Below, piece after piece: positions 1,952 through 37,899 of a stretch of 64,000 nt of DNA (the stretch's first letter is position 1; the number at the start of each line of letters is the position of its first letter). The DNA is from Piromyces finnis finn (taxonomy: Eukaryota; Fungi; Neocallimastigomycota): assembly GCA_002104945.1 (NCBI GenBank), contig MCFH01000053.1, positions 62,001 through 126,000 of the forward strand. The letters run 5' to 3'. The notes below the pieces were generated by a model. That model did no database searches. It worked only from the letters and a program-made list of their open reading frames with translations, and was not told the origin of the DNA. The translations under genes were made by a program, and so were the position numbers.

Positions 1952-3097
1952 TTAATTTAAAGATTCGAAAACAGTGGAAAGGAAGTTGTATAAACCAGCG
2001 TTAACAGCTGGACCATCGTGATCAGCACCTGGAACTTCAAACCAAATGTGTTCTTGGTTGTTTCTAGTTAAAATTTCATGATAACTCTTTGGGAATTGTT
2101 GAACAACAGAATCGTTAGTACCACAAGAAATAAGAGTAACGTATGGGGTATTATCAGTACGGAATTCATCTTCAGTGAATAAACCCTTGTGGTAACCTGA
2201 GAAATCAGTACCTGGAGTAACACCTGGAGCTGGTGAGAAAGCACCAACATAACCGAATAAATCTGGTCTCTTGTAACCGATGTAAAGACTGTTACGACCA
2301 CCCATAGAGAAACCGCAGATAGCAGTGTTATCTCTACCAGTAGCAACAGAGTAAGTTGATTCAATGTATGGCATAATATTTTCAGTTAAATCATTAATGA
2401 AGTTATCATAACCATCAAAGTATTCTTGAGCGAAAGAAGCTTCAACAGCATTACCGTCTTGTGGAGCATAAGTATTTGGAAGAACCATAATGAATTCTTT
2501 AGTTTTTCCTTCATTTAATAAATTAGTTGGAATTTGAATGGTGGCATATTGATCTTCTAACATAGTATCTTCATTACAGAAGATACCATGTAAGAAATAA
2601 ACAACTGGGTATTTTTTATCTTCAGAGTAATTTACTGGAAGAATAATATTTAATGGACGTTCAGATTTAGTAGTGTTGGAGTAGTAGTATACCTTTTGAG
2701 CAGTTGGGTAAGTAACACCATCATGGAAAGTAGAAGCTTCTACTGGACAAGTATTAACAACATTAAGTTTACTCATATATTCACTTGGAATAATAGTTGA
2801 AGTTTCTTCTTCACTGAAAGAGTCTTCTTCGACATTATTATCATCAACATTAACTGAAACTTCTTCTTCAGAAGAAATTTCATCTTCACTGTAAGTTTCT
2901 GGAATGGCATTACTAGCAACGCTTTGAATTCCACACCATTGACCATTTTCAATACCCCATTCACCATTTTCATCAACATGAACAACTTCAGTTGTGTTTT
3001 CACAACATGAGTATCCTAAAGTTTCAGAAAAGCAATTAGCTGAAACTTCTGAAGCTAAAACAACAGCAACTAAAGATAAAATATTTGAGGCCTTCAT
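1952..3097 (-). CDS. Secreted fungal-dockerin (CBM10/NCDD)-fused CE1 esterase, feruloyl-esterase-like (cellulosome component)
   Basis: Intronless 381-aa ORF. Signal peptide MKASNILSLVAVVLASEVSA, dockerin CFSETLGYSCC...WGIENGQWCGI, acidic linker, then alpha/beta-hydrolase with YPVVYFLHG, nucleophile GFSMGG, CGTND (Asp) and GADHD (His), as in clostridial/ruminococcal XynY/XynZ-type FAE domains. Confidence 0.9.
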   Translation of the reverse strand: MKASNILSLVAVVLASEVSANCFSETLGYSCCENTTEVVHVDENGEWGIENGQWCGIQSVASNAIPETYSEDEISSEEEVSVNVDDNNVEEDSFSEEETSTIIPSEYMSKLNVVNTCPVEASTFHDGVTYPTAQKVYYYSNTTKSERPLNIILPVNYSEDKKYPVVYFLHGIFCNEDTMLEDQYATIQIPTNLLNEGKTKEFIMVLPNTYAPQDGNAVEASFAQEYFDGYDNFINDLTENIMPYIESTYSVATGRDNTAICGFSMGGRNSLYIGYKRPDLFGYVGAFSPAPGVTPGTDFSGYHKGLFTEDEFRTDNTPYVTLISCGTNDSVVQQFPKSYHEILTRNNQEHIWFEVPGADHDGPAVNAGLYNFLSTVFESLN

Positions 3098-5704
3098 TTT
3101 AATTATATTAATAAATATTAAATTATGTTAATTATATAATAAATAATAACTAATTAATTTAGATATTAGATTAAAAAAAAAAAAAGAAGTTGCCAACTAT
3201 TTATATTAAAATTTTTCTTTTAATATTTATTATAAAATAAAATTCTTTTTTATTAATTATTTTTTAGTATAACACAAAATTATGACTAAAAATTTTAATA
3301 AATATTATATTAATTAAAATTTTTCAATTTATTATTAATATATTCAGTATCTATTTGTTTACATCCTAGTTTATTAAAGTTTTCTAGTTAATATTTTTCT
3401 CTATAGCAAATCAGATGCTCTCAAAAAAGATCATCCTTATACTATAGCTTTTTAATTAACCTTATCTTTTATTTATTTAAAATAAAATTTTGAGTTTAAA
3501 GATTCATATTTTCTATATTATATAAGGCTATTGTTACATTATATATTAAAAATATATTATTTTTCAATTACATAATATTATGTAAAAACCTTGTTGGTTG
3601 TGTAACAAATGTTGATTTCTTGTTTTTTATTGGTTAATTCAATTATTATAATTATTATTAAAAAATAATGGTTAATAAAATGGGATAAATTCTGTGTAAA
3701 TTTTATGATTATGATAAAATTGAAATACTTGAACAAAAGATATTGTTTATATTGTTTGTTGTTTATTAAAAAGACATAATATAATAAAATTATTTTAGGG
3801 ACATTTTAGTTAATATGTTTTTTGTATTAAAATGGTAATGCATTTGCACTTTTATTTCTTTGATTATATCTTTAGTATGATTAAAGAAAAGTAAGAATAA
3901 TAAAGATATAAAAAAATGTATTAAATATTTTTTTTATAAATTAAATAATTTCAATAATATATTAATCAGTTTTATCTTTTTTGTTTAAACCTATAATTAA
4001 TTAGTTTTTTATAATGAGTATTATTATCTTTTAATTATTTTCTTTTGGAAATGTCACCATTATACAAATTAAATGATTTACACCCTAAATTTCTATATAT
4101 GTTAATATTAATGTTATAAAGAAAAATTAAGTGTAAATCAATATTTTTGTGTATCATTATTTTAATATATTTAATTATTCTATTTTTTATCCAATTCTTT
4201 TTTTGTTTTTTCATTTTATTAACAGATTTTTATATTGAAGCTCAATCTTTACCTAATAATGTAATAAATAAATTTCTCTAAACTTTTTTTTTATAAACAT
4301 TTTTCTTTTAATAAATATTTAATATATTTTTAAATAAAATAAATGAATTTTTAATTGAAAAGAGCTTCAACATTAATTACTTTCTATTTATTTATGTTAA
4401 CTTTACATTGATACTCACAATTATTTTATTTTGTAAAAAATAACTATATTGAATGAATATTAATAAAAAAAAAACATAATGCTTTTCTCAAATAAAAACA
4501 TAACAAAATACTACACTATGGTTTATTTAATATCAATAATAATATTAATTTATATTTATGCCATTTTCAATTGATTATAAAAATATTTATATCTATATAC
4601 TTTTTTTTTTTTGGAGAAAATAAGGAATTGATACAAATAATTAAAACATGGAATGTTCATTCTTTTTAAAACAATATTGTATATTGTGAATTTACTAATA
4701 GGTTGTTTGAAAAATTCTATTAATATTTTTATGGGATGAATTTCATTTACAAAATTTATAAAATTTAATCATTTCTTTTCATTTTATATTATTAATACTT
4801 TATTTCTAAATAATTTGAAAGATTTTAGTATGTTAATAGTGCTTAGATAAATAGTATCCCTTATTTTTTTGATGCTGATAGCATTCCTATTTATTGAAAT
4901 TATTAGACATTTTAATTCTATATTAAATAAAATTATTTAATTCTATTAAAAAAAGAGTAACATTTTTTAATTTATATAAAAAATAATTACACACATAAAA
5001 ATTGATATTCAAAGGAACAATAAATAAATTAAATTAAATGATAGGCATTAAAAATAACACATATTTTAATTATACTTGTGTAACATAATATAAATAATAA
5101 AATAGAATTTAAATTGTAGTTTTTTTTATTTTTTTATTTTTCTTGGTAAATTAGAATTGTTATTTTTTTTCAGTTTTAATGATTAAAGGTTGACTGATAA
5201 ATTATATTCCAATTAAATGTATTTATTTATTAATAAAAAAAAAATAAATTATTCATTTTAATAGTATTTTTTTTTTTTTTTGTTGTTGTTGTTGTTGTTG
5301 TTGGTATTTATTACAATAGTTTTTTTTTTTTTTTTAATTAATTCTATAAATAATATGTACCAAAAAAAGAAAAAGAAAAAGAGGTATGATTCTCAATAGC
5401 TATAAAACTAAATTTTTAATAAGAATCAATTGAATTTAAATTCTTTTAATATTTATTCAATCGTCAAAATCTATAAATACATATATTGTTTATATTTCTA
5501 TATAATATTTAATCATTAGTTATTGTACTAAAATATAATAAAATAAATACTTTTTAACGAAAAAGTTTTTTTTTTTTTTTTTTTTTTTAATATTAAAAAC
5601 TTTACATTAACCTATTATTGTTTTGTTTTTGTAAAATTTTGTTATACTATTTTTATTTTTAAAATTTTGTCTCTTTTTTTTTATTTATTAATTTATTTAT
5701 TAAT

Positions 5705-5857: not shown

Positions 5858-8484
5858 TTAATTAGCTATCCATGAGCATACAATACTCATAATTATAAAC
5901 AAGAGAGTAATTGATGTAGTAAAAGACATTGATGAACCACTAGAAGTAGTATTATTAGAAGATGCATTATCATCTTCATTACTGGAACCAATAGACATTA
6001 TTTTTCCTCCTACAACACCATATCTTGGATCAGATTTAAGACTTGGTATTCCTCCATAGGCTTGTTGAACATCAACAGCTTTATATTTGACCCAAGCTCT
6101 TAAATTTTCAGTTGAAACTTCAGTATCTGAATATTGAGCTTCTATAACAGAAGTAGTTGGTTTATTTTGTACATCTGCATTACTAAAAGTTTGAGTTTGA
6201 ATAATATTATAACAAAATACATCCCAATATAAATCATCAATTAAAAATTGATGGAAATATTCGATTCTTGGACCTAAAGCTTCAATATTAAATAAATTTC
6301 CTACAACATCCTTTATCATTTCTTCAAATTTTGGTTTAATATTGATATTGTTAATAATTTTATCATAAAGAATTGGATTTTTTTTTCCTGGATTTGGACC
6401 ATAACTTTGGTGCTTAGTATCTTCAACATTAGCAATATAATCATCAAATGTTCCCTTATAATAAAAAAATATTATTAATAATATAAAAATATAAAATATA
6501 ATTAATATAAAAATTAATATTAACAGTTACCTTTCCTGGTTTACACCATTTACCAAAAGTTAAATCAAAATCATAAGAGAAGAAATGGTACTTTCCATTA
6601 TTTGGTTCGATGTAGGTAAAGAAATTATTACCATTAATATTATAACTATATATAATATAATTATTCGTATAAATATCATAAATTATTAATAGCTATTATT
6701 TAATATTTTATAAATATAACTATATAAATTAAATATTTACCCATCCCATTGACAAATTAAATATTCGATAATACAGCTTTTTACAAATTCATTAGATAAA
6801 AATTTACAGTTCATTAGATAAAAAAAAACACGCTAACTAAATAAAAAATATATAATAATATATTTGCTTACTATTTTAAAAACATATCAACATCAAATTG
6901 CTTTTCAATTTCTTCTAAAGGAGCATTTAATGGTAAATTTTCAGCCCATCTATTATTTATACATATATATAAATAATTTAAGAATTATTTTAAATTTTAT
7001 TTTACATACAAATTATAAATTAATATATGCTTAATCTAATTTTAAATATATTTTGATTATTTTTGTTTGTTACATACGCAATCATGTTGTTTATATCTTG
7101 ATGAGGATCGTAACCACCTGTTGGTTCAACAACACTTTCATAAAGATCTTGAATTCTGGAATTACCAATATCACTATAGAAATAGGCTGGGTATACACCA
7201 GAAACGCCCTATTAAATTTGTTTTTTATTTATAATTTTTAAAATTATTTTAATTTTTATTATTATACTATTATTATTATTATATTTTTATATTAATTTTT
7301 TACCTTATATAATGAACCATAGACATATCCATCTGTATTCTTTTGGATATTAAAGAATCTTTTTAAAAATGATTTTTTGTACATATCAGCAATTTCATAC
7401 AAACCATATGATTTATTATTAATATATAATCTACATGGAGCAGATTGAGCAATTGGTAAACCTAAAGATTCTGCAATATCACCTGCTAACTTATTTTTAA
7501 TACCAGATTCATCATAACGTATACTACGAAGTTTGAATTGACTACGGTTGAAAATTTTTGTATTCTTTTTGTCGGCATCCCCTTCAGATAAATCAAATTT
7601 ATATGGTTTCTTTTCTTGACCTTTAGAACCTTGACCTGAAAGTCCAAGAGTAACATTGGTGAAAGTTAATTTTTCATATGGACTAATAGTAATTAGTTAA
7701 TATGTAATCATTACAATTTTAAATATTATATATAATTATATTCATGTGTACAATGTTTACAATTAAATAAAATATTGAATTAATTTTCCGTTAGTATTAT
7801 AAGTATTTATAATTATCACTATATATCATTGATACATACGAATAGAAATCAAATGAAACTTTATATTCAACGTCTTGATTACTAGAAAGTTGTGTTAAAG
7901 AGTTATAATCAGCAATTTCCATATGAAGATTAATTACTGGGATTTCACCTTCTTGGAAAAGTTGAGAATATTTATCATAACCTTCAAGTTTTGGATAAAG
8001 TCTTGGAATTGTTTGAATAATAGAATCACCTATTGTGTTACGACGTCCGAAGACTTCATATAAAGTGGTTGTACTCGATGGATCCCACTGTCTTTGAGAT
8101 TGAAATAAGACTGATTCATTTTGTGTTGTACCAGTGACTTCATAATAATATTGAGTTGGTGTTCCGTCATACTCAAATTCATACAAAATATCATTGTTTT
8201 TGGATACCATAGGATATGATGCACCATCAATATAAACTGTTACACCAGTTCCTCCGTAATCGCCTGCTGCACATAAAACCTTAAAAGAAACAGCAGATGC
8301 AGTACTAGCAAAAGAAGCTAATACTTTTGATAATTAAATAATTAACACAAAAAAAGAAAAAAAAAGTTTTATTAAAATTTACATTTAATATTTACAATAA
8401 ATATATATTATTGTTATATCTATATTATTATAGTTTAAAAAAATATTCTATACCTAATAAAGAATTTAATGATATGAACTTCAT
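5858..8484 (-). CDS. cotH: CotH-family kinase / spore-coat-like secreted protein, multi-exon, hydrophobic GPI/TM-like C-terminus
   Basis: Spliced start MKFISLNSLL|VLASFASTASAVSFKVLC (ATG 8484, intron about 8453-8324). Internal exons read GLSGQGSKGQEKKPYKFDL, FKLRSIRYDESGIKNKLAGDI, CRLYINNKSYGLYEI, typical of CotH. Last exon ends in a Ser-rich linker plus a hydrophobic tail. Internal exon boundaries not all resolved. Confidence 0.85.
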
Positions 8485-10915: not shown

Positions 10916-11141
10916 TTTATTTTATTTTATAATTTAATCCTTAATAATTATAAATTATAGATTTTATATAGTATAAATTTTTTACTTTTTATTTAATGAA
11001 TATGAATATAGAATTATCTATTTTTTAATCAAAGTAATAATTATTTAATTTATTTATAAAACTTTAATTATAATAAATAATTGATTTGAATCTATTTTAT
11101 TTGAATATTAATATTAATATATACTGAATTTTTTTTAATCC

Positions 11142-11358
11142 TATTAAGAGTTGTTTAATTTAGGTTTATAATTATGTCAACTTTATTAATATATTTTATG
11201 ATAAAGAACTACTTGCGTTACATTCTTCTCAAACTACATGTATTTATACATTTACATTGTGGCTTAAACATATAATCAAATACAATATATACAAATACGT
11301 TTTAATACATTTCAATACATTTGAATACATGTGACATAACGTTTCACATATTCTAACA
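11142..11358 (-). mobile_element. Solo LTR (217 bp) of the same family as the 32693-37588 element
   Basis: Near-identical to the 32693-32908 LTR (differences mainly in the first ~30 nt plus two substitutions). Flanked by 5-bp direct repeat AATCC (11137-11141 and 11359-11363). Minus-strand termini TGTTAG...TTAATA. Confidence 0.9.
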
Positions 11359-13028
11359 AATCCTATTAATTAAATTTAATTCAAAAACAAAATAACTAAA
11401 CTTTAATTATATACATAAAATTTGTACCACTAAAGAAAGCCTATTTTTTTTTTTTCAGGAATATTAAATAAAATGTAGTTTTACTTTTACGATGACTATT
11501 ATATAATAGTTTTTTTTTTTTTTAGTAATATTGTATATTTACTCTTTTTCATTTATTTTGGTATATAATATTATTATTATAAAAAAAATTGGTATCATCT
11601 GAATATTTATTTGAAAAAAAAGAAGATTAATATATACTCAAACACAAAATGATATTGTATTAATATAATAGTAACTGTTTTTTTACTAAAATAATAATAT
11701 AATGATTATCCTTAAAAATAATAATTAATTAATATATATATTTTTTGAATCTTATATATGTATAAATGAATAGTATTTCAATAATATATAATAATATTGG
11801 AATATAATTTAAAAGTATTCTAAAATTTATATTTAAGGATTTAAAAGAAATAAAAAAATATAATCATATAATTTTATATATTTAATAGTTTTTTTATTAA
11901 AATATAAATAATATATTATTTACACTAATTATATTTGTTAGAAGATTATAATTTTAAATAGAATATTAAATTATTATTACTAATCTTTATTCTAAAAGAG
12001 ACTTTTTATAATTGCAACAATATTCATATAGAAATTCTATAAGTTTACTATTATAAAATTAATACTTATTTCATATATATATTTTTGAACACTAATAAAT
12101 TAATACCTTAAAAGTTGCATGAAATATATATATTATTTTATCATAGTTTATTTATTATTTTTATTATTAAAACGATAATGATGATTCTTATAAGTCCAAA
12201 AAAATATCTATATTATAAAAAAAGTTTAACTTTTTCTAGTGAATACTAACAAGAGGCTAAATTAAATTGATAATAATAAAAAAAAAAAAAAGTAACATAG
12301 CATACAATATTTAACTAAATAAATATATAAAAAATAATTAAATAAATAAAACAGTAAAATTTATTTAATTATTTTTCTTTTTAAATTTTTTACTTTTCTT
12401 TATGATTAGTTTTTTCTTTTTCTCATAAATACTCTTTTATACTCTTTCATTTGAAATGATAATAAATAATAAATTACGACTAATATACCTAATATATATA
12501 TTGAACTATTTGAATAGATGATATTCTATACCTTTTTTAATAAATCATTCTATAACATGCTGCTGTTGTTTTGTTGATATGTTGTGTTTTTGTTTTTGTT
12601 TTTTAAATAAAGTATTTTTCTGCAACGAGATCCATACATATTATTGTATAGTTAATGATTTATAGCTATTATAGTGGTTTTTAATAATTTTATAAATTAT
12701 CTACTTAAAAAACTTTTCAACATTCTTAAGCATAAAAAAGTTGGCAAAGTTCCACTATTTCTTCGGTAAAAATTATAACATAATCTGATAAATATATTAT
12801 CATTTATATTATTATCAATACTATTTTCAAATTAATTAACATTTATTCATTTATATATATATATATATATAGGTGTATATCTAAAAAATTAAATCGCATT
12901 TTAATTTTCATTTGTATCTTATTTTGTTGGGAAAAAAAGGTGAAAATGACTATCATATTTTTAAATTTTTCGTTTTTTATAAAAAAAAAAAATAGACTTA
13001 TTAGCATGTTATAAATATAATAAAGCAC

Positions 13029-16000
13029 CTAAAACATGGTAGTCTTTTTTGGATTAATTTCTGATTGACTTTTCATCTTAAAGGCTTGAGAAAAGTTTTC
13101 AACCTGACTTTGATATTCTTCCAAATATACAGAAATATCTTGACTATTTGATGCTAATTTATCTTCTTGAGTAAAAGCCTGAGAATTATTCATAAAACCA
13201 AGTTGACTAGATTGAGTAAGGAAAGATTGTGAAGAACCAAAGGTTGGACCAATAGATTGTTGAGATTTAAGACCAATATCTTTATAGTTGGAATTACTAG
13301 ATCTAAACATTGATTGAGAATTAGATAATTGAGAATTCATATCTTGACTGTATCCTTGAGAATATAACGGTATTTGGAATTGAGAATAGGAACGGTTTGG
13401 ATCAATAAAACCAACAGAATCATGAAATGCAGAATAGGATGGCTTTCCAGATGCAAAATTTGCTGAAATATTCATATTTCCAAGACCATTAGTAACTATT
13501 TTTAATAAAAAATAAAATCATTTAGTATTACGAAATATTTATATTTATAAATAATAATGACAATATAATAATATAAAAATTTACCATCTTTAACTCCGTT
13601 ATTAACATCTGTTGTACTACTAGTTGGACTTCTCTTATCATTATTAAAGTATTTGTATTTACCATTCTTTAATCTTCTTGGTCTTTGGAATTGAATCATA
13701 CTAGTCTTGAGATTATTTAATGGACCTTCAACTAAAACATTTCTTTCCTTATAGTGATTTAAGAATTGATACCAAAGTGGATGTTTGGAAAGAACCTTTG
13801 GATTACCTAAAATACAAATACCATACTTAGCACGAGTTAAGGCAACATTTAAACGACGTGGATCGTTTAAGAAACCAATACCTTGATGCTCATTAGAACG
13901 AACACAAGATAAAATAATATAATCCTTTTCACGTCCTTGGAATGCATCAACACTAGCAACTTCAATTTCTTTATAATAATCTTTCTTTAATGAACCATTA
14001 TATTGCATATAACTAACAACAAAGGAACGTTGACCTTCATATGGGGTAATAATACCAATTTGTTGTGGTTTAACACCACTTTTTACTAAACGCGTGACAA
14101 TTTTTTCACAATTTGCTGCTTCGGTTCTATTTAAATACGAAGTACCAGAAGATGAGATTTCTTCTTGTCCAAATGAGGAATGGAAGAACATTGGAGTTTC
14201 TGGTACTGGCCATGGGAAGTCAATTTCCTTTCTTAAACGTTCATGAATGGTAACACCATTTTGAAGACTACCTTCATAGAACATATTAGATGGGAATTCA
14301 GAGAGGCATGGATGCATACGGTATTGTACTTGTAAACGAATTGGACGAATACCCAAAATAACTAATCTTTCGAATAATGATTGACTTAAACCTGCTCTTT
14401 CAGCTTTCTTACTTAAAATTACAGGGCCTAATTGTTTATGATCACCAACCAAAACAGCTTGTTTACAACCCATAACTAATGGAATAAGACATTCTGGTTC
14501 ACAAGCTTGGGTAGCTTCATCAATTAAAACTGTCTTAAATTTGAAGTTAGCTAAACGTGGATCACCAGCACCAACACAAGTACAACAAATAACATCTGCA
14601 TTTTGAAGAATTTCTCTTTCACAAGTTTTCTTTAAAGATTTGTATTTCTTTTCATCTTGAGAACTTAATTCACCTAATTCATTTTTTAAACGAATTAACT
14701 TTTGAAGTTCAGTGTTTGTATCATTATTTTGAACTTGTTCATGAAGAGTAAGGAATGAAACAGGAGATTCAAGAGCTTCTCTACTCTTTGCTGTCATTCT
14801 TACAACTTTTAAACCTGTTTGATGAATTTTTTCAGTTAATTGATCAACAGCAACATTACTTGGAGCACAAACTAAAACTTGACCAGGATTCATTTTAGCT
14901 AAATGATAAACAATTGTAGCTGAAGTTACAGTTTTACCAGTACCTGGAGGACCTTGAATTAAACTCAATGGTCTTTGTAAAACACTCTTAACGGCGTAGA
15001 CTTGAGAATGATTCAACTCTGGTAAGTTTTCAGCAGAAAATCTTTTTGGAATTTGAGTTTTTAAAATTTGTGGTTCAACATCATGACCAAGAAGACGATG
15101 ATAAATGTAACCACTAATTGAAGTTTCATCAACAGCAAAGATTTTCATTGCATGTTGCATTCTATCAAAAGAAACTGATTTCCAAACAAAATCAACAGAG
15201 AAATTATGAGTGCAATCAATTGGAATATGGTCATTTCTGGTAAATTCAAGTGCAACTTCATCTGATAAATTATTTGGAATCTTAATTACGTGACCTTTGC
15301 CTTCCCATTTACTATGTAATTCACCTTCATAACGTAAAATTAATTCATCACCAATCATTAATTTAATATCACCTTGTTCCAATTTTGGTAAAATGAAATA
15401 TGCAACTCTCTTTTGATTTAAACCCATATCCCATCTTACAACAACGTCTTCTTCTGTTTGGGACTCCTTTAATTGTTTATCATAATCAGCTTCTATTTTA
15501 ACTAATGGTCCAAAAATATTTTGATATTGATAAGCATCTTCATACCTTTTATATAATAATAAAAATTATCAAAAAAAATTTTTAAAAAAAAAATTTATTA
15601 TATATATAATGAAAAAAAATCAATAAATAATATATTTATCTATGTTTTAATAAATAATATATTTTTAACTTTTAGGAATAAATAATTACTTTAATAAAAT
15701 AGATTGAGGTTCATCATCAACATTTGGTTTTTCTAAATCTTCTAAATTTACTTCATTATTACTTCTCCATAATTCTTCTAATTTATTAATTTGTTGTGTT
15801 GTTATATGACGAGCTCTTAATTGTTCTTGTTCTGATGGAACTCTAACTAACCAATTTAAGAAACAATGGTCATCAATTAATGGTAACCACTGTGAAACAT
15901 CCCAATTCATATCTTTCTGATTTGATATACTTGCACATGGCTGTCTATATAATTTGATTTTTAATTATAGCATTTTAATTAAAAATATTGATCCCAACAT

Positions 16001-26281: not shown

Positions 26282-32408
<6,127 letters not shown>

Positions 32409-33280
32409 TTTTATACCATATTTTTATTCTCTTTTATAATTCTAATTGTATGCTGTTTTAATTATAACAATTTAAAACAAAATATTAATATAAAATGAAT
32501 ATATAATTAAAATTAAAAATGAATATAAATATATTTATATATTATTCATATGTATTACTTAAAAAAGAAATTTTATCCTAATATTTGGTATTAAAAAAGA
32601 GAATTATTCTTTATTTTATTATATTTTCTTCTTTAAATATACCATAATTTTAATTTAAATTATATTAAAAATATTTAAATATTATTTGTTTATATTAAGA
32701 GTGGTAATTTAGGATTTATGATTATGTCAACTTTATTAATATATTTTATGATAAAGAACTACTTGCGTTACATTCTTCTCAAACTACATGTATTTATACA
32801 TTTGCATTGTGGCTTAAACATATAATTAAATACAATATATACAAATACGTTTTAATACATTTCAATACATTTGAATACATGTGACATAACGTTTCACATA
32901 TTCTAACATTCCCCCTCAAACCTAATTTTCTACTAAGTAAAATTTGGTTTGCTGGTGAATATGTGCATTTTATTATTTCTAAACTATTAACTATAAACTA
33001 AATCTAATGTTTAAAATTTTTATATTTCATTAACTGGAATTTAAAATATTTCACATATATTATTCACTAATTGCTTTAAAGAATTTAAATATTACCCTAT
33101 AACTTCGTTTTTATGGATAAACTGAAAACCTTTGTATAATTGGGTAGTATTAAAGTTTAAAATTTGGATTGGATATTCATAAATTGTTATACCATCCATT
33201 AAGGATTGAAAACCCTTCCGGTTTTACATTATCCTATAAACTATATTGGTAATCTCTCTGAGATTTACACAGAATTATAG

Positions 33281-33515
33281 ACAACACATGGTTTATCTCT
33301 TTGATTTTACGTCCTTATGACAACGCATGGTTTACCTCTTTGGTTTTACGTTTTCTTAACAACTCATGGTTAACCTTTGATTTTACGTCCTTATGACAAC
33401 ACATATGGATAACTCCTTTTGGTTTTACGTTCTCTTAACAACCTATGGTTAATCTTCTTGGTTTTACGTTCTTCGGACAACCTATGGATAACTCTCTGGT
33501 TTTATGTCCTTATAA
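33281..33515. repeat. Tandem 37-42 bp repeat (6 units) inside the LTR element
   Basis: Units start ACAAC at 33281, 33320, 33359, 33396, 33438 and 33477; consensus approximately ACAACNYATGGWTWACTCTYTGRTTTTACGTYYT. Confidence 0.85.
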
Positions 33516-35396
33516 CTACAATTTTCTTTAGAATATTAGCATAATTGTATTTCAATCTATTTGTAAATACTAATTAATAATGGTAAAATTTTAATTAAAT
33601 TCTTAATAGTTATTTAGTTTATGTATATTGAATTTTAACATTTTCTTTTAGGTGTTTTTCCTTCCTTTTATGCCTTTTGTATTGATTAATTATTCTTATA
33701 ATATTTAAGAATATTTTACTTTGTATTTGAAATTTTGTTCTTTTCATTTTTACATATTGAATATTGAATCTTATAGATTTTTACATTTGAATTTCAATTC
33801 ATTCTATTTATTAAGCCTTAGTTTCTATGCAATGTTTTAGTTATTTCCAATGTTTAACTAGAAACAAAAATTATTATCTTGAATTTTAAATTTCGTATAT
33901 TCACTACTTCCCCCTCAAATCTAGATGTTTAGTAATAAATATTTAGATTTGAAAATGAGAAATTTAAATTTCATAAAATTTCATTCATTTTGCATCAAAT
34001 TTTCATAATAATGAATAAATTTTCATAACATATACGATAAATTTTAATGCCTATATTAAAATAAATAACATATTCTAATGTTTTCATTCATTTTTCTCAA
34101 TTACTAATCCTTTTAAGTGTTGTGAAATTAATGAAATGATTATTAAAATCAATCAAACAATTAAAATATACTTCAAGTATTTATTTCTTTACTTCAAATT
34201 AAAATAAGTAAATATACCAGTAAGATTATAACAAGTTAATATGATAAGATAATGACATTTAAAGTATCGATTGTTGAAGAGAATAAAGTTCTTCTAAACA
34301 ATATCGAAGTCGGCTCGGTTAATTAGAATGTCAGCTAATAGGTCGGCGATCACTCACTACGTTTAAAGTGGCGATATGTATATGAGGGTTTCTAAAATCA
34401 CCGTAAATTTAATTTTAAAACGGCGTCACAACATTCTTGAATGTTGGTAATAAATATATATGATGAATCAATGTCATCTAAATTTATGGAGCCCTTTCTA
34501 TAAAGGTGCTACATTTTATTGATGGGACCAAATTAAATATATGTAGATCTTGAACCATCATTAATAAATATCTATGAATTTAACTCATTTCACGCTAAGT
34601 TAAATCATGATAAGTTGTTAAAATATTATTGAATGCACCCATTTCACGCTAGGTCATTCTAAATATATATGTGTAGAATATGCTCATTTCACGCTAAGCA
34701 TTTCTAACTTTAATAAATTACCTCATTTAAAATATATGCTTTGTAGATTAGCAATAACTAATAATTGCCTACGGGATGAGCATTTGACCAGAAATATATT
34801 TGCTTTGTAGATTAGCAATAACTTTAATAATGCTTTTGAGGCTAAATATATTATCTTAATGTGTTGTTATAGTAAATCAATTCAAAGAGTTGTATACTGG
34901 ATTAAATAATATATACTAATTTTGAGTGATATTATCATGATGAAGTTGTTTGACATTTTCACAAGGATAGTTCAATTCTTTTTGTATAATTTCATTGTAA
35001 TAGGATATTTTATATAAACTTATCAAATAATGTTTAATTATTCTAATTATTGTTTCTAATTGTAAAAATTAATTATTTTCTTCAATTCTTTCCCCTATGG
35101 CGGAAAGGATATTATCTCATTAAAATAGTAGTAGTTAAAATATTCGAATATTTCACAAACAATTTATTTACTTGAAATAAATATGTATGCTTTTAATAAC
35201 GATAATGCTATTTTATGAATGTTAATAAAACTAATTCTTTTAAAAATAAAATGAATGTTTGTAGGTGTATGTATGTTTATGAATATTTACATAATTGAAT
35301 ATATGGATTTTTAAATGATAATGAATGTAAATTGACATAATGAGTAGATCAAAATCAAATTAATAAATTTAATAAATTGAGTAAATTAGGAGAATT

Positions 35397-36599
35397 CTAA
35401 TATACAATGTTTATTTGCCAAAACATTACTGACATTAAAATAATAAATACATTTGCGAGAGAAATATATTTGAAGTTTACAGTTCCGTTTGAATCTTCTT
35501 GTTCGTCATTAAGTTGGTTATCAACAATATAATAACCACAAGATTCACTATCAACTATATTAATGTCATTAGAAATATTAGTTATATCGGTATTGTTAGA
35601 GATAATTGGTATTTTGGATATACTGACTTTACTAATGTCAACTTTATAACCAAGATCGCATAACTTTTTAATATAAAATTCACCAATATGATCACAAATT
35701 TCTATACCAATTTTAGTATATGTTTTACCAAAATTGATATAGGTTGAATAGTCACAACCTGCAAATAGTGCAGCCTCAGCTGCTCTTCTTCTTACTAATC
35801 CTGGAAGAGGTTTTAAAACACCGTTTACATATCCTTTGTTGTATTCTAAAATCTTTTTATTAATTTCTTCCTTTGTTCTCCGACCATTATTAGTTAATCC
35901 ATCAATACTTCCAACATTATAAGCAAAACTACATAATGCATCATATTCATTTTGATTCCAATTATATTTATAATTGAAAGATTTTACATTAGGACCATAT
36001 TTTTTTTCGATTGAAAGTTTTAACCATTTCTCTGCAGTTTTTTCATCTATTGTTAAGCCCTCGTTGATATATGTTCCAGTAATATCATAGTTAGCACTGG
36101 TAGTACCGTAACCAATAGTCCATACTCCAACCGGATCTAAATAGGCAGTTAATACACATCCTTCAAAAATTTTGATTATGTTAATTATATTGTCACTTAC
36201 TTTTAATTGATCATTATTTTGATTTGTATTTGGAACGCATAGTCGAATAACACTAGGTCCTGGGCATTGGTCCATATATCTCGTGTAAGATTCTTCTGAA
36301 CAGTCATCTTCATTTATATTTTTACATTTTCCTGTATTTAGAAGAGCTGTTCCATCTGTAAGTGTATCGACATCTTTTATACAGCATTTAATATTAACTG
36401 AGTCATGTGTACAAAAACCTGCATATGCTTTAGCATTGCCAGTTTGTTTATCATTTAATTTACATTGATCCTCTCTAACGCAAACACCTGTTCCGACATC
36501 GGTTACATGACATTTTTGATTTTCAGCAATTACCAATGGTAGAATTAAAATTGTCGAAAAAATATTTAAAAAATATATTACTTTGCTTCTTAATCTCAT
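35397..36599 (-). CDS. GH24 phage-type lysozyme (muramidase) with N-terminal signal, Cys-rich fungal domain(s) and C-terminal hydrophobic anchor
   Basis: Intronless 400-aa ORF. FEGCVLTAYLDPVGVWTIGYG carries the E-x8-D-x5-T catalytic triad; NQNEYDALCSFAYNVG and LPGLVRRRAAEAALF are endolysin/autolysin-type GH24 signatures. N-terminal hydrophobic leader, two Cys-rich repeats (GVCVREDQC...GFCTHDSVNIKCC; GKC...C...CPGPSVIRLC), tail ISLANVFIILMSVMFW. Confidence 0.93.
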   Translation of the reverse strand: MRLRSKVIYFLNIFSTILILPLVIAENQKCHVTDVGTGVCVREDQCKLNDKQTGNAKAYAGFCTHDSVNIKCCIKDVDTLTDGTALLNTGKCKNINEDDCSEESYTRYMDQCPGPSVIRLCVPNTNQNNDQLKVSDNIINIIKIFEGCVLTAYLDPVGVWTIGYGTTSANYDITGTYINEGLTIDEKTAEKWLKLSIEKKYGPNVKSFNYKYNWNQNEYDALCSFAYNVGSIDGLTNNGRRTKEEINKKILEYNKGYVNGVLKPLPGLVRRRAAEAALFAGCDYSTYINFGKTYTKIGIEICDHIGEFYIKKLCDLGYKVDISKVSISKIPIISNNTDITNISNDINIVDSESCGYYIVDNQLNDEQEDSNGTVNFKYISLANVFIILMSVMFWQINIVY

Positions 36600-37899
36600 T
36601 CTTTGGAGTATTTATAATATTAATATATTTGATGAAATTTAATAACTCAATTGTAAATAATTATATAAAATAAATTTAGAGTTCACTAGTTAATTTATAC
36701 TGTTTGTAGTGAATAAGGTAAACTGAGAATGAAATTCTATTGTTTATTTAATTCTAAATTTATATTTCGAATTTGTACTTTATTAACTTTGAATTTAATT
36801 TTACAATATCTATTCATAAATAGTTTCTAAAATAATTAATTCTTTTCAATTTTGAATACTTTAATTTATTTCTGAGTTTTAGGCATTGGTTGTATTTGAA
36901 TAAAATAAATTTTATGTTGGTTCAAAATTATTTAGAGTTCAATTTGTTTTGTTTATTTTTAAATTTAAAGATTTAAATTAAAAGTTAAAAAATTCAAAAT
37001 TCAATTTTAGAATAATTTGCTTTCGGAATTTAAAATTGTCTATATTATTTTAGTATAAGGAAACTTTGTTTATATCAGGTAATGTTTTTCTTTCATTTTA
37101 CTGGATTATTTGGTATTTCGTGGTTTTTCAATTTTAGATTGCCATTTCAATTTCAAAATTTTTGAAATCTCAAATTCTAGATCTCAAAACAGTTTTACCA
37201 AACATAGATAATTTCAGATTAAATAATTTAATTGTAATGGTTAGAATTTCCTACTGTTTTCTCCTTTGACATAATACTGTATCCGGCAGTTTGATTCATC
37301 TTTCAGAGAATCATTTGAGAGTCAATGAGGGTCATTGAGATTCTCTCTTGAGAGTCATTGAGACTCTTAATCTATTAAGAGTGGTAATTTAGGATTTATG
37401 ATTATGTCAACTTTATTAATATATTTTATGATAAAGAACTACTTGCGTTACATTCTTCTCAAACTACATGTATTTATACATTTGCATTGTGGCTTAAACA
37501 TATAATTAAATACAATATATACAAATACGTTTTAATACATTTCAATACATTTGAATACATGTGACATAACGTTTCACATATTCTAACAGTTTACGACCAT
37601 ATATGTTTTAAATGCTTTAAATTATTAAATTTCTAAAATTAATAAACTACAATTCAAATAATAGAATTTATTATAGATTAGGTTTTGATCTAAATATTAT
37701 AATATGTAATGACCATTTTTCACTTAAAAGTTATAACCACATCCAAAAAAAAATGAATAGGAAAGAAAAAGAACCTATTACTAATCGGCATTATGAAAGA
37801 AATTATAAAATTATTTAATAAAAATTATTATATTAGCATTTAAATAAACAATATTTTTAATATAAATCGTATTAAGAAAATAAAATATATTTAATTTAT

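Follow-up and report, generated by a model that had tools for sequence, protein, structure and literature searches.

A young, non-autonomous copia-type LTR element of Piromyces finnis with a predicted phage-type lysozyme gene in a probably swappable cargo slot

How does a gene for a phage-type lysozyme come to lie, alone and uninterrupted, between the long terminal repeats (LTRs) of a retroelement in an anaerobic gut fungus? The question is raised by a 64,000-nt stretch of the Piromyces finnis finn genome (contig C182, GenBank MCFH01000053.1, positions 62001-126000; hereafter the window, to whose numbering the coordinates given without a contig name refer), which was analysed against the whole assembly of 56.5 Mb in 232 contigs. 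An earlier inspection of the same letters, here called the sequence-only reading, had proposed a very recent, non-autonomous LTR vehicle whose only gene is an antibacterial lysozyme. The analysis presented here bears out each part of that reading that could be checked in the sequence, and leads to a broader answer, to which we assign a probability of roughly 80%: the element has transposed recently and belongs to a non-autonomous, copia-derived LTR family with a swappable cargo slot, which in this copy holds a selected, most likely antibacterial gene of glycoside hydrolase family 24 (GH24).

The element extends over 4,896 nt (32693-37588) and all its features given below lie on the minus strand. 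Its 5' LTR (37373-37588) and 3' LTR (32693-32908), of 216 nt each, agree at 216 of 216 positions; in element orientation both begin with TGTTAGAA and end with TCTTAATA. LTR positions 111-118 form a TATA-like box, and positions 172-177 read AATAAA. A 5-bp target site duplication (TSD), GTTTA, is read directly on either side (32688-32692 and 37589-37593). The polypurine tract (PPT) TTGAGGGGGAA (32909-32919) adjoins the 3' LTR and, since it stands on the minus strand and abuts the left LTR, the element is read on that strand, co-oriented with its open reading frame (ORF). A 14-nt primer-binding site (PBS; 37359-37372) adjoins the 5' LTR. In element orientation, the LTR (1-216) is followed by a common leader (217-445), a variable slot running from 445 or 977 to approximately 2223-2239, a common ORF-less region up to 4680, and the second LTR (4681-4896). 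Thus, the identical LTRs, intact TSD and PPT described in the sequence-only reading are all in place, as is the very recent insertion deduced from them.

This copy is far from alone. The LTR is present at no fewer than 42 places in the genome, from 137 first-look candidates, and at least 21 full copies of 4.2-5.5 kb were found at 21 loci, all of them with the same LTR start and end. Each full copy has its own 5-bp TSD, different at each locus, except for two damaged copies (L044 and L049), and the flanking DNA differs at every locus. The two LTRs of a copy are identical at 213-216 of 217 positions in most cases. Nine solo LTRs were also recognised, all nine with their own 5-bp TSD; one of them lies in the window (11142-11358, minus strand, 97% identical to the element LTR, with the TSD AATCC at 11137-11141 and 11359-11363), and is evidence of an older insertion that recombination between its LTRs has removed. 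The closest sister, on contig C189, differs from the copy in the window by a single nucleotide in 4,896. Because its LTRs are identical and a sister copy is only one nucleotide away, the element is very young. The single C189 change lies in the U3 part of the LTR and is present in both C189 LTRs, which fits the regeneration of both LTRs from one RNA template. The signs of copying through an RNA intermediate are indirect, namely this doubled change and the intronless cargo.

Taking into account that the genome is rich in LTR debris, it might be thought that no retrotransposition took place, and that a host gene happens to lie between two solo LTRs, or that a segmental DNA duplication or an assembly error was mistaken for an element. 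Nothing more specific speaks for such an explanation. The unit ends exactly at the LTR ends, all complete loci have matching 5-bp TSDs around it, the PBS and the PPT stand where they should, a substitution is shared by both LTRs of the sister copy, and no two loci have the same flanks; this explanation can hardly be entertained.

Some copies show further rearrangements. The copy on C200 (L032:1883-2480) contains, in an otherwise identical lysozyme element, a 598-nt insertion resembling a short interspersed nuclear element (SINE), with a tRNA-type head, a poly(A) tail of approximately 70 nt and a 13-bp duplication; its presence inside so young a copy indicates that retrotransposition of the SINE/LINE (long interspersed nuclear element) type has also been active very recently. 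Locus L022 (C200:348490-351706) is an internally deleted mini-element composed of an LTR, 82 nt of leader, approximately 300 nt of the 3' domain and an LTR, to which a further PPT and LTR are added, giving a tandem LTR-interior-LTR-interior-LTR array. Sequences with 69-75% similarity to the LTR lie within approximately 100 nt of the end of the C189 copy (L031:5707-5849) and within 16 nt of the end of the C43 copy (L033:5689-5806); these copies could have inserted beside older LTRs of related sequence, or the element could prefer certain targets. There is also a second LTR family of smaller size, with a 3.8-kb interior (C152:619541-623381, C208:151354-155194 and C80:17583-21422), in which the junction of LTR end and PBS is the same and that of the PPT nearly identical. 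In two of its members (C152 and C208), a 483-aa ORF is situated approximately 875 nt past the PBS, and its N-terminus shows 37-38% identity to the cysteine-rich domain described below.

What the copies carry is not constant. Six of them, on C182, C189, C200, C43, C35 and C222 (group A), contain the lysozyme ORF. In three others (group B), the signal peptide, cysteine-rich domain and tail of group A surround a different middle domain, and in one (group C) a different signal peptide precedes the B-type domain, to which a second domain and, again, that tail are joined. One copy (group D) holds an unrelated 196-aa ORF, and the remaining ten (group E) hold a stop-riddled copy of a cytoplasmic seryl-tRNA synthetase (SerRS; E = 9e-28 to fungal SerRS). 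All 10 copies of groups A, B and C have a fully open effector ORF, whereas each of the 10 SerRS cargoes is dead, with no more than 92 open codons. Around this slot the backbone is held in common: the leader (37144-37358) is approximately 85-91% identical across every cargo group and the ORF-less 2.46-kb region (32909-35366), an interior of the kind found in large retrotransposon derivatives (LARDs) with no ORF above 45 aa, approximately 91-93%. The expectation that the lysozyme travels on other LTR pairs was therefore borne out, with six copies at six loci, so that the gene is not unique to this insertion. As the cargo of the family, it has to share its place: it is one of several interchangeable cargoes rather than the family's sole gene.

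The cargo ORF in the window (35397-36599) encodes 400 aa without introns, and is the only ORF of the element above 45 aa. It is identical in the C189 and C200 copies, 96% identical in C43 and 82-83% in C35 and C222. The protein begins with a signal peptide (aa 1-25; 36525-36599), a hydrophobic N-terminal window without any amino-acid change among variants A and B, followed by a ten-cysteine domain (aa 27-130; 36210-36521) made of two Cys-knot-like modules that belongs to no Pfam family. The GH24 domain (aa 143-275; 35775-36173) matches Pfam PF00959, Phage_lysozyme, over profile positions 1-125 of 125 (90.5 bits vs a cut-off of 22.3; E = 1.4e-25), and solved GH24 endolysins match the ORF at E = 1e-16 through the catalytic stretch. 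Glu146, Asp155 and Thr161, spaced by 9 and 6 residues within the stretch aligned to those endolysins, have the spacing of the T4 lysozyme triad, and the three residues are kept in the diverged C222 copy. By profile and triad, the cargo is thus classed as a GH24 phage-type lysozyme, and the single, uninterrupted, co-oriented GH24 frame with its triad announced by the sequence-only reading was found as described. A C-terminal hydrophobic tail (aa 378-400; 35400-35468), one of two hydrophobic windows in the protein and common to variants A, B and C, would be a membrane or glycosylphosphatidylinositol-type anchor signal.

Regarding its origin, the GH24 domain shares 55-64% identity with endolysin-type proteins carrying bacterial wall-binding modules, and one close relative is encoded directly after a holin in the lysis cassette of a temperate prophage; by these relatives, the domain is assigned a phage-endolysin origin. 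Relatives also join GH24 to chitin-binding modules. In the genome, GH24 matches above the cut-off comprise the six element copies and one marginal match on C186 (27.3 bits vs 22.3). A metagenome scan with the ORF gave only GH24 relatives of 30% identity. A word-based protein search with the N-terminal domain returned the element's own proteins only; similar Cys-knot-like modules are repeated in two other proteins, P0003 and P0007. The cargo is, therefore, a chimera in which fungal-type modules (signal peptide, Cys-knot domain and C-terminal anchor) are joined to a phage-derived GH24 domain.

The first of these two proteins, encoded in another organism (P0003, 658 aa; Logan contigs L070 and L071), consists of a Cys-knot module, GH24, more Cys-knot modules, a chitin-binding module, NlpC/P60 and a hydrophobic tail. 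Its GH24 has 77% nucleotide identity to that of the element, and the DNA downstream of its gene is collinear with part of the element's ORF-less region (66-75%), which indicates that the association of gene and backbone is older than P. finnis. Within the P. finnis genome, tandem clusters of intact ORFs of 309-412 aa (C184:236173-248934, and also C146:154449-156847 and C180:303213-303860) have N-termini 35-42% identical to the cysteine-rich domain of the cargo; they may represent paralogs in the host, from which the captured scaffold came or which themselves arose from it.

The other intact cargoes were compared with known folds. The middle domain of variants B and C gave no significant match in Pfam or the PDB by sequence or profile search. 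A model built from a 26-sequence alignment (pLDDT 91) was matched, in the top 15 Foldseek and top 5 VIA results, exclusively to bacteriocins of the colicin M (ColM) class or to a Bacteroides type VI secretion system (T6SS) effector, with moderate scores (E from 1.5e-4, TM 0.42-0.54, Z 5.8-7.2). The domain has a near-invariant DxWDFE, resembling the DxYDF core of colicin M. The active-site motif of colicin M is DxYD(x5)HR, in which His-Arg is essential (PMC8469651). Since no His-Arg follows DxWDFE, the domain is not classed among the ColM-class lipid II hydrolases; the model supports, with moderate confidence, a relationship to colicin M at the level of the fold. In variant C, the consensus of the second domain shows a conserved motif with a Cys and, downstream of it, a His; a PDB match to NlpC/P60 stayed below the threshold (E = 0.75) and Pfam gave no match, so that an NlpC/P60-like domain is possible. 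The single-sequence fold of the whole variant C cargo was of unusably low confidence (pLDDT 31), and the ESM Atlas returned nothing for variant C or for the N-terminal domain. For variant D, the same resource listed papain-like or TseH-type entries, which serve as leads only. Thus, the case for bacterial-wall attack as a common theme is solid where GH24 is concerned, moderate with the ColM-like domain and tentative with the other domains. Among metagenome contigs with homologs of the ColM-like domain, only short LTR- or PPT-like similarities, too weak to call, were found. One such contig, which is AT-rich (L077), encodes a 746-aa homolog, with short LTR-like repeats at L077:3074-3287 and 7567-7752 and a PPT-like run, whose similarity to those of the element (75-85% over 50-120 nt) is likewise too weak to call.

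Is the lysozyme gene being kept, or simply carried along? Between its lineages, nonsynonymous divergence (dN) is approximately 0.10, synonymous divergence (dS) approximately 0.04 and non-coding divergence approximately 0.05, so that dN/dS, whose comparison among lysozyme copies had been suggested earlier, lies at approximately 2-2.6, with the ORF open in all six. In a neutral simulation based on the substitution spectrum seen in non-coding DNA from the same elements, the ORF stayed open in 0.2-0.3% of runs (P = 0.002-0.003). Nonsynonymous changes account for 92% of the changed codons vs 78% expected (P = 0.0004), change is faster in the ORF than in non-coding DNA of its elements (P = 3e-5), and one in-frame indel was observed vs seven expected. 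The N-terminal domain reaches a dN/dS of 1.5-3.9 between lineages, yet all ten cysteines and the signal peptide are invariant. The SerRS cargo, dead in every copy, served as an internal control for ORF retention. The lysozyme ORF is thus kept open and gains amino-acid changes faster than neutral DNA, which fits a protein engaged in an arms race.

It could be argued that the ORF is a neutral passenger, captured by chance, too young to have decayed and without function for the fungus or the element. Three of its copies are in fact identical and very young, copies with a dead SerRS have spread just as well, and the depths in the sequencing runs described below fit copy number alone. Mere youth does not account for the fact that lineages approximately 8.5% apart in the ORF are all open, at the low simulated probability and with the deficit of indels given above, or for substitutions biased to amino-acid change that leave the cysteine scaffold and the signal peptide untouched; we regard the passenger explanation as improbable.

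Could the element itself need the protein, as an envelope-like or accessory membrane glycoprotein rather than a cargo? A signal peptide, an ectodomain and a C-terminal hydrophobic anchor are the topology of an envelope protein, and the second LTR family mentioned above has an ORF with a related N-terminal domain at the same offset from its PBS. However, ten young, TSD-flanked copies carry a dead SerRS in place of the ORF, showing that transposition does not require it; moreover, the domains are of wall-degrading enzyme types and not fusion proteins, and without gag-pol an envelope would have nothing to package. We consider this possibility very improbable.

More deserving of attention, though still unlikely, is the alternative that the protein is real and selected, and serves nutrition (through digestion of bacterial peptidoglycan) or the remodelling of the fungus's own surface, instead of defence. 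GH24 proteins of early-diverging fungi have been filed under cell-wall remodelling, without evidence (PMC8778642), and relatives of the domain are combined with chitin-binding modules. On the other hand, fungal walls contain no peptidoglycan, diversifying selection is typical of conflict and not of housekeeping, and the sister cargoes resemble domains of bacteriocins or T6SS toxins. An antibacterial role, therefore, is preferred for the lysozyme in what follows.

The next question is what moves the element. Its PBS is complementary, at 14 of 14 nt, to nt 27-40 of a tRNA-Lys(CUU) gene located on C227 (L069:1470-1543, minus strand), confirmed with ARAGORN; a tRNA scan of the window found none. 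The PBS core has approximately 150 sites genome-wide, vs one for the control, and sits at the PBS position of Copia elements bearing reverse transcriptase (RT), at the start of their polyprotein ORFs. Matches to rve (integrase) and RVT_2 (RT) inside single polyprotein ORFs, for instance on C79, have this PBS 1.5 kb and 2.9 kb upstream of them, respectively, and rve followed by RVT_2 is the Copia order. By its primer site, the element is thus classed as copia-type. In all the Copia families of this genome that were examined, the PBS is complementary to that half of tRNA-Lys(CUU) which holds the anticodon stem-loop, and neither a tRNA 3' end nor the initiator tRNA-Met is used. Drosophila copia and yeast Ty5 are primed by an internal half of the initiator tRNA-Met. 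As in those elements, the PBS studied here directly follows the 5' LTR and pairs with the anticodon stem-loop region instead of the tRNA 3' end; the difference lies in the tRNA, which in this case is tRNA-Lys(CUU), nt 27-40.

The 3' end points in the same direction. The exact 19-nt junction of PPT and LTR start has 38 sites in the genome, vs two for a reversed control that was counted at up to three mismatches, and at least five of the 38 (on C159, C188, C206, C229 and C198) lie 0.7-0.9 kb downstream of RVT_2 matches on the same strand; an RT-bearing lineage, hence, shares the 3' junction of the element. An autonomous Copia with the same LTR, PBS and PPT had been proposed as a search target; the PBS and the PPT/LTR-start junction are shared with RT-bearing elements, but the LTRs of two families with the same PBS are unrelated.

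No gag or pol was detected in the family. The cargo is the only appreciable ORF of the element, no family copy was present among genome-wide RVT_2, RVT_1 or rve matches, gag-pol was found inside none of 30 LTR loci examined, and tblastn with two Copia gag-side segments gave no match. The lack of an intact gag/pol is therefore confirmed, and the opposite scenario, with all other members carrying gag-pol and no lysozyme, does not hold, as no family member has gag-pol. The element is non-autonomous and LARD-like. LARDs, known from plants and fungi, are LTR elements that are not autonomous (Kalendar et al. 2004, cited through PMC4646964) and, like this family, surround a long conserved non-coding interior with LTRs, lack gag/pol, are multi-copy and are presumably mobilised in trans. 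By definition, however, LARDs are non-coding; here, a slot holds intact, apparently selected protein genes, and its content is swapped between copies.

Thus, it is proposed that the element keeps only parts acting in cis, namely LTRs with TATA-like and poly(A) signals, the tRNA-Lys(CUU) primer site, a short leader, a constrained 3' domain and the PPT, and that Gag, protease, integrase and reverse transcriptase would be supplied in trans by Copia elements with the same primer. The slot between the leader and the 3' domain differs in content between copies, and in this one holds a gene without introns, whose product would be secreted, is probably anchored at the surface, and joins a disulfide-rich module to a GH24 muramidase domain of phage-endolysin origin. 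Copies would recombine, most simply by template switching between co-packaged RNAs, shuffling leaders, N-terminal domains, effector domains and backbones, and retrotransposition would then multiply each combination. The protein would most likely attack the walls of bacteria touching the fungus.

Mosaicism is apparent in the distances between copies. The last kilobase of the interior before the 3' LTR (32909-33908) is nearly invariant, with p-distances of 0.001-0.015 (0.1-1.5%) among all cargo groups, whereas the adjacent LTRs differ by up to 0.08 (8%). The leaders are of two types, approximately 30% apart, that do not follow cargo type; the N-terminal domain of group B is closer to that of the copy in the window than is the N-terminal domain of the C222 lysozyme copy; and in a backbone tree of the shared region the lysozyme carriers are paraphyletic. 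Exchange between co-packaged RNAs would be the simplest mechanism for this pattern. The invariant domain contains an array of tandem repeats of approximately 39 nt (33261-33492; direct-repeat family D3), and could be a packaging signal, a sequence shared with the helper or a separate RNA. An Rfam search of the element gave sub-threshold noise only, with no match for this domain, whose folding energy is unremarkable (z = -0.3).

As for expression, the leader preceding the ORF is 740-890 nt long and contains 6-10 upstream ATGs, and the last 75 nt or so before the start codon are identical in A and B copies though their leaders are approximately 30% apart. This stretch carries TATA-like boxes within the cargo-proximal region (36600-36719), a putative internal promoter; given the long leader with its upstream ATGs, the ORF is probably transcribed from a promoter of its own and not from the LTR.

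Several observations weigh against the proposal of a mobile, selected, antibacterial cargo. Four runs were compared with the element: three consist of contigs of RNA-or-DNA type, whose depths fit copy number alone, and in the one true metatranscriptome the contigs lie only within the invariant 3' kilobase, over 32734-33652, which has the highest depth in all the runs compared. The SerRS-carrying subfamily is the most numerous, so that a functional cargo is not needed for spread. In all copies the LTRs start with TG and end with TA, the canonical CA being absent, and the related Copia families of this genome have LTRs ending in CA. The RT-bearing relatives with the shared 3' junction have listed open frames of only 267-629 aa and look broken. 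Two Copia families with polyproteins of 1439 and 1509 aa, considered as helper candidates, share the PBS and were rejected, their LTRs being unrelated, with similarity within the shuffled range. The muramidase activity of the ORF product is a prediction from sequence. Finally, the selection signal comes from three lysozyme lineages in one genome, obtained by simple counting methods in very AT-rich DNA, and could be inflated by recombination with diverged paralogs.

A more ambitious interpretation would see the whole family, a population of recombining copia derivatives without transposition genes, as a retroelement-based system that diversifies and amplifies the antibacterial arsenal of a eukaryote, by shuffling a secretion and anchoring scaffold with GH24, ColM-like-fold and possibly NlpC/P60 modules, and by copying successful combinations under diversifying selection. 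We put this forward tentatively, as possible rather than likely; if true, it would constitute a eukaryotic, RNA-mediated counterpart of the polymorphic-toxin cassettes of bacteria.

The parallels with known systems are partial. Maize Bs1 is a gene-capturing LTR retrotransposon. Elements of the Bs1 type likewise take in and amplify host sequence, and the SerRS copies described here are of that ordinary kind; captured plant fragments, however, are mostly partial and decaying, whereas the effector ORFs of P. finnis are complete, include signal peptides and are open in all 10 copies, with dN > dS. Antibacterial genes are also known to have moved from bacteria or phages to eukaryotes, as in GH25 lysozymes and the T6SS-derived dae amidases, which are likewise prokaryotic or phage wall-degrading enzymes kept by a eukaryote. 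Those are single host loci, whereas here the gene rides on a retroelement that multiplies and recombines it. Gene capture by LTR elements has been discussed for maize (PMC2774510), and LTR retrotransposons of bdelloid rotifers carry varied extra ORF3s (PMC5408684), a similarly modular gain of enzymatic ORFs shared between element lineages; the rotifer elements are autonomous, with gag-pol, and their ORF3s are thought to serve the element, whereas in P. finnis the vehicle is gene-less and the cargo looks host-beneficial. In fungi, the ToxB effector has been amplified by a Helitron-like element (bioRxiv 10.1101/2025.11.13.688278), and AvrLm6-like genes of Venturia overlap predictions of LARDs and miniature retrotransposons with terminal repeats (TRIMs) (PMC4646964). 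In these two cases, as here, a mobile element has multiplied the gene of a secreted effector, but the mechanism is a Helitron in the former and was left open in the latter, the targets are plants and not bacteria, and no interchangeable cargo slot has been described.

Literature searches returned no LTR-borne lysozyme and no interchangeable antibacterial cargo in anaerobic fungi. An expansion of GH24 in Piromyces has been noted without explanation (PMC8778642), and that of P. finnis is traced here to retrotransposition. Anaerobic gut fungi share a crowded habitat with bacteria, and little is known of how they maintain themselves there; the family offers a concrete case of a selfish element that multiplies and recombines intact genes that appear beneficial to the host, and joins three usually separate fields: phage-to-eukaryote transfer, gene capture by transposons and the evolution of antimicrobial arms races. 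Among the practical leads are possible new families of cell-wall-targeting enzymes, including a eukaryotic fold relative of colicin M, and a copia lineage primed by a tRNA-Lys half.

With regard to the surroundings of the element, a gene for a Dis3-like exonuclease (26282-32408, minus strand; RNB domain, several exons) starts approximately 285 nt from the 3' LTR, so that the insertion lies in its upstream region. Other neighbours encode a CBM10 esterase (1952-3097) and a UPF1-type helicase (13502-15427). On the other side, between 42339 and 54382 (minus strand), three ORFs of 940, 631 and 1507 aa have RVT_1 domains and no integrase match, and represent other retroelements, which raise the GC content to approximately 30% over 39-57 kb.

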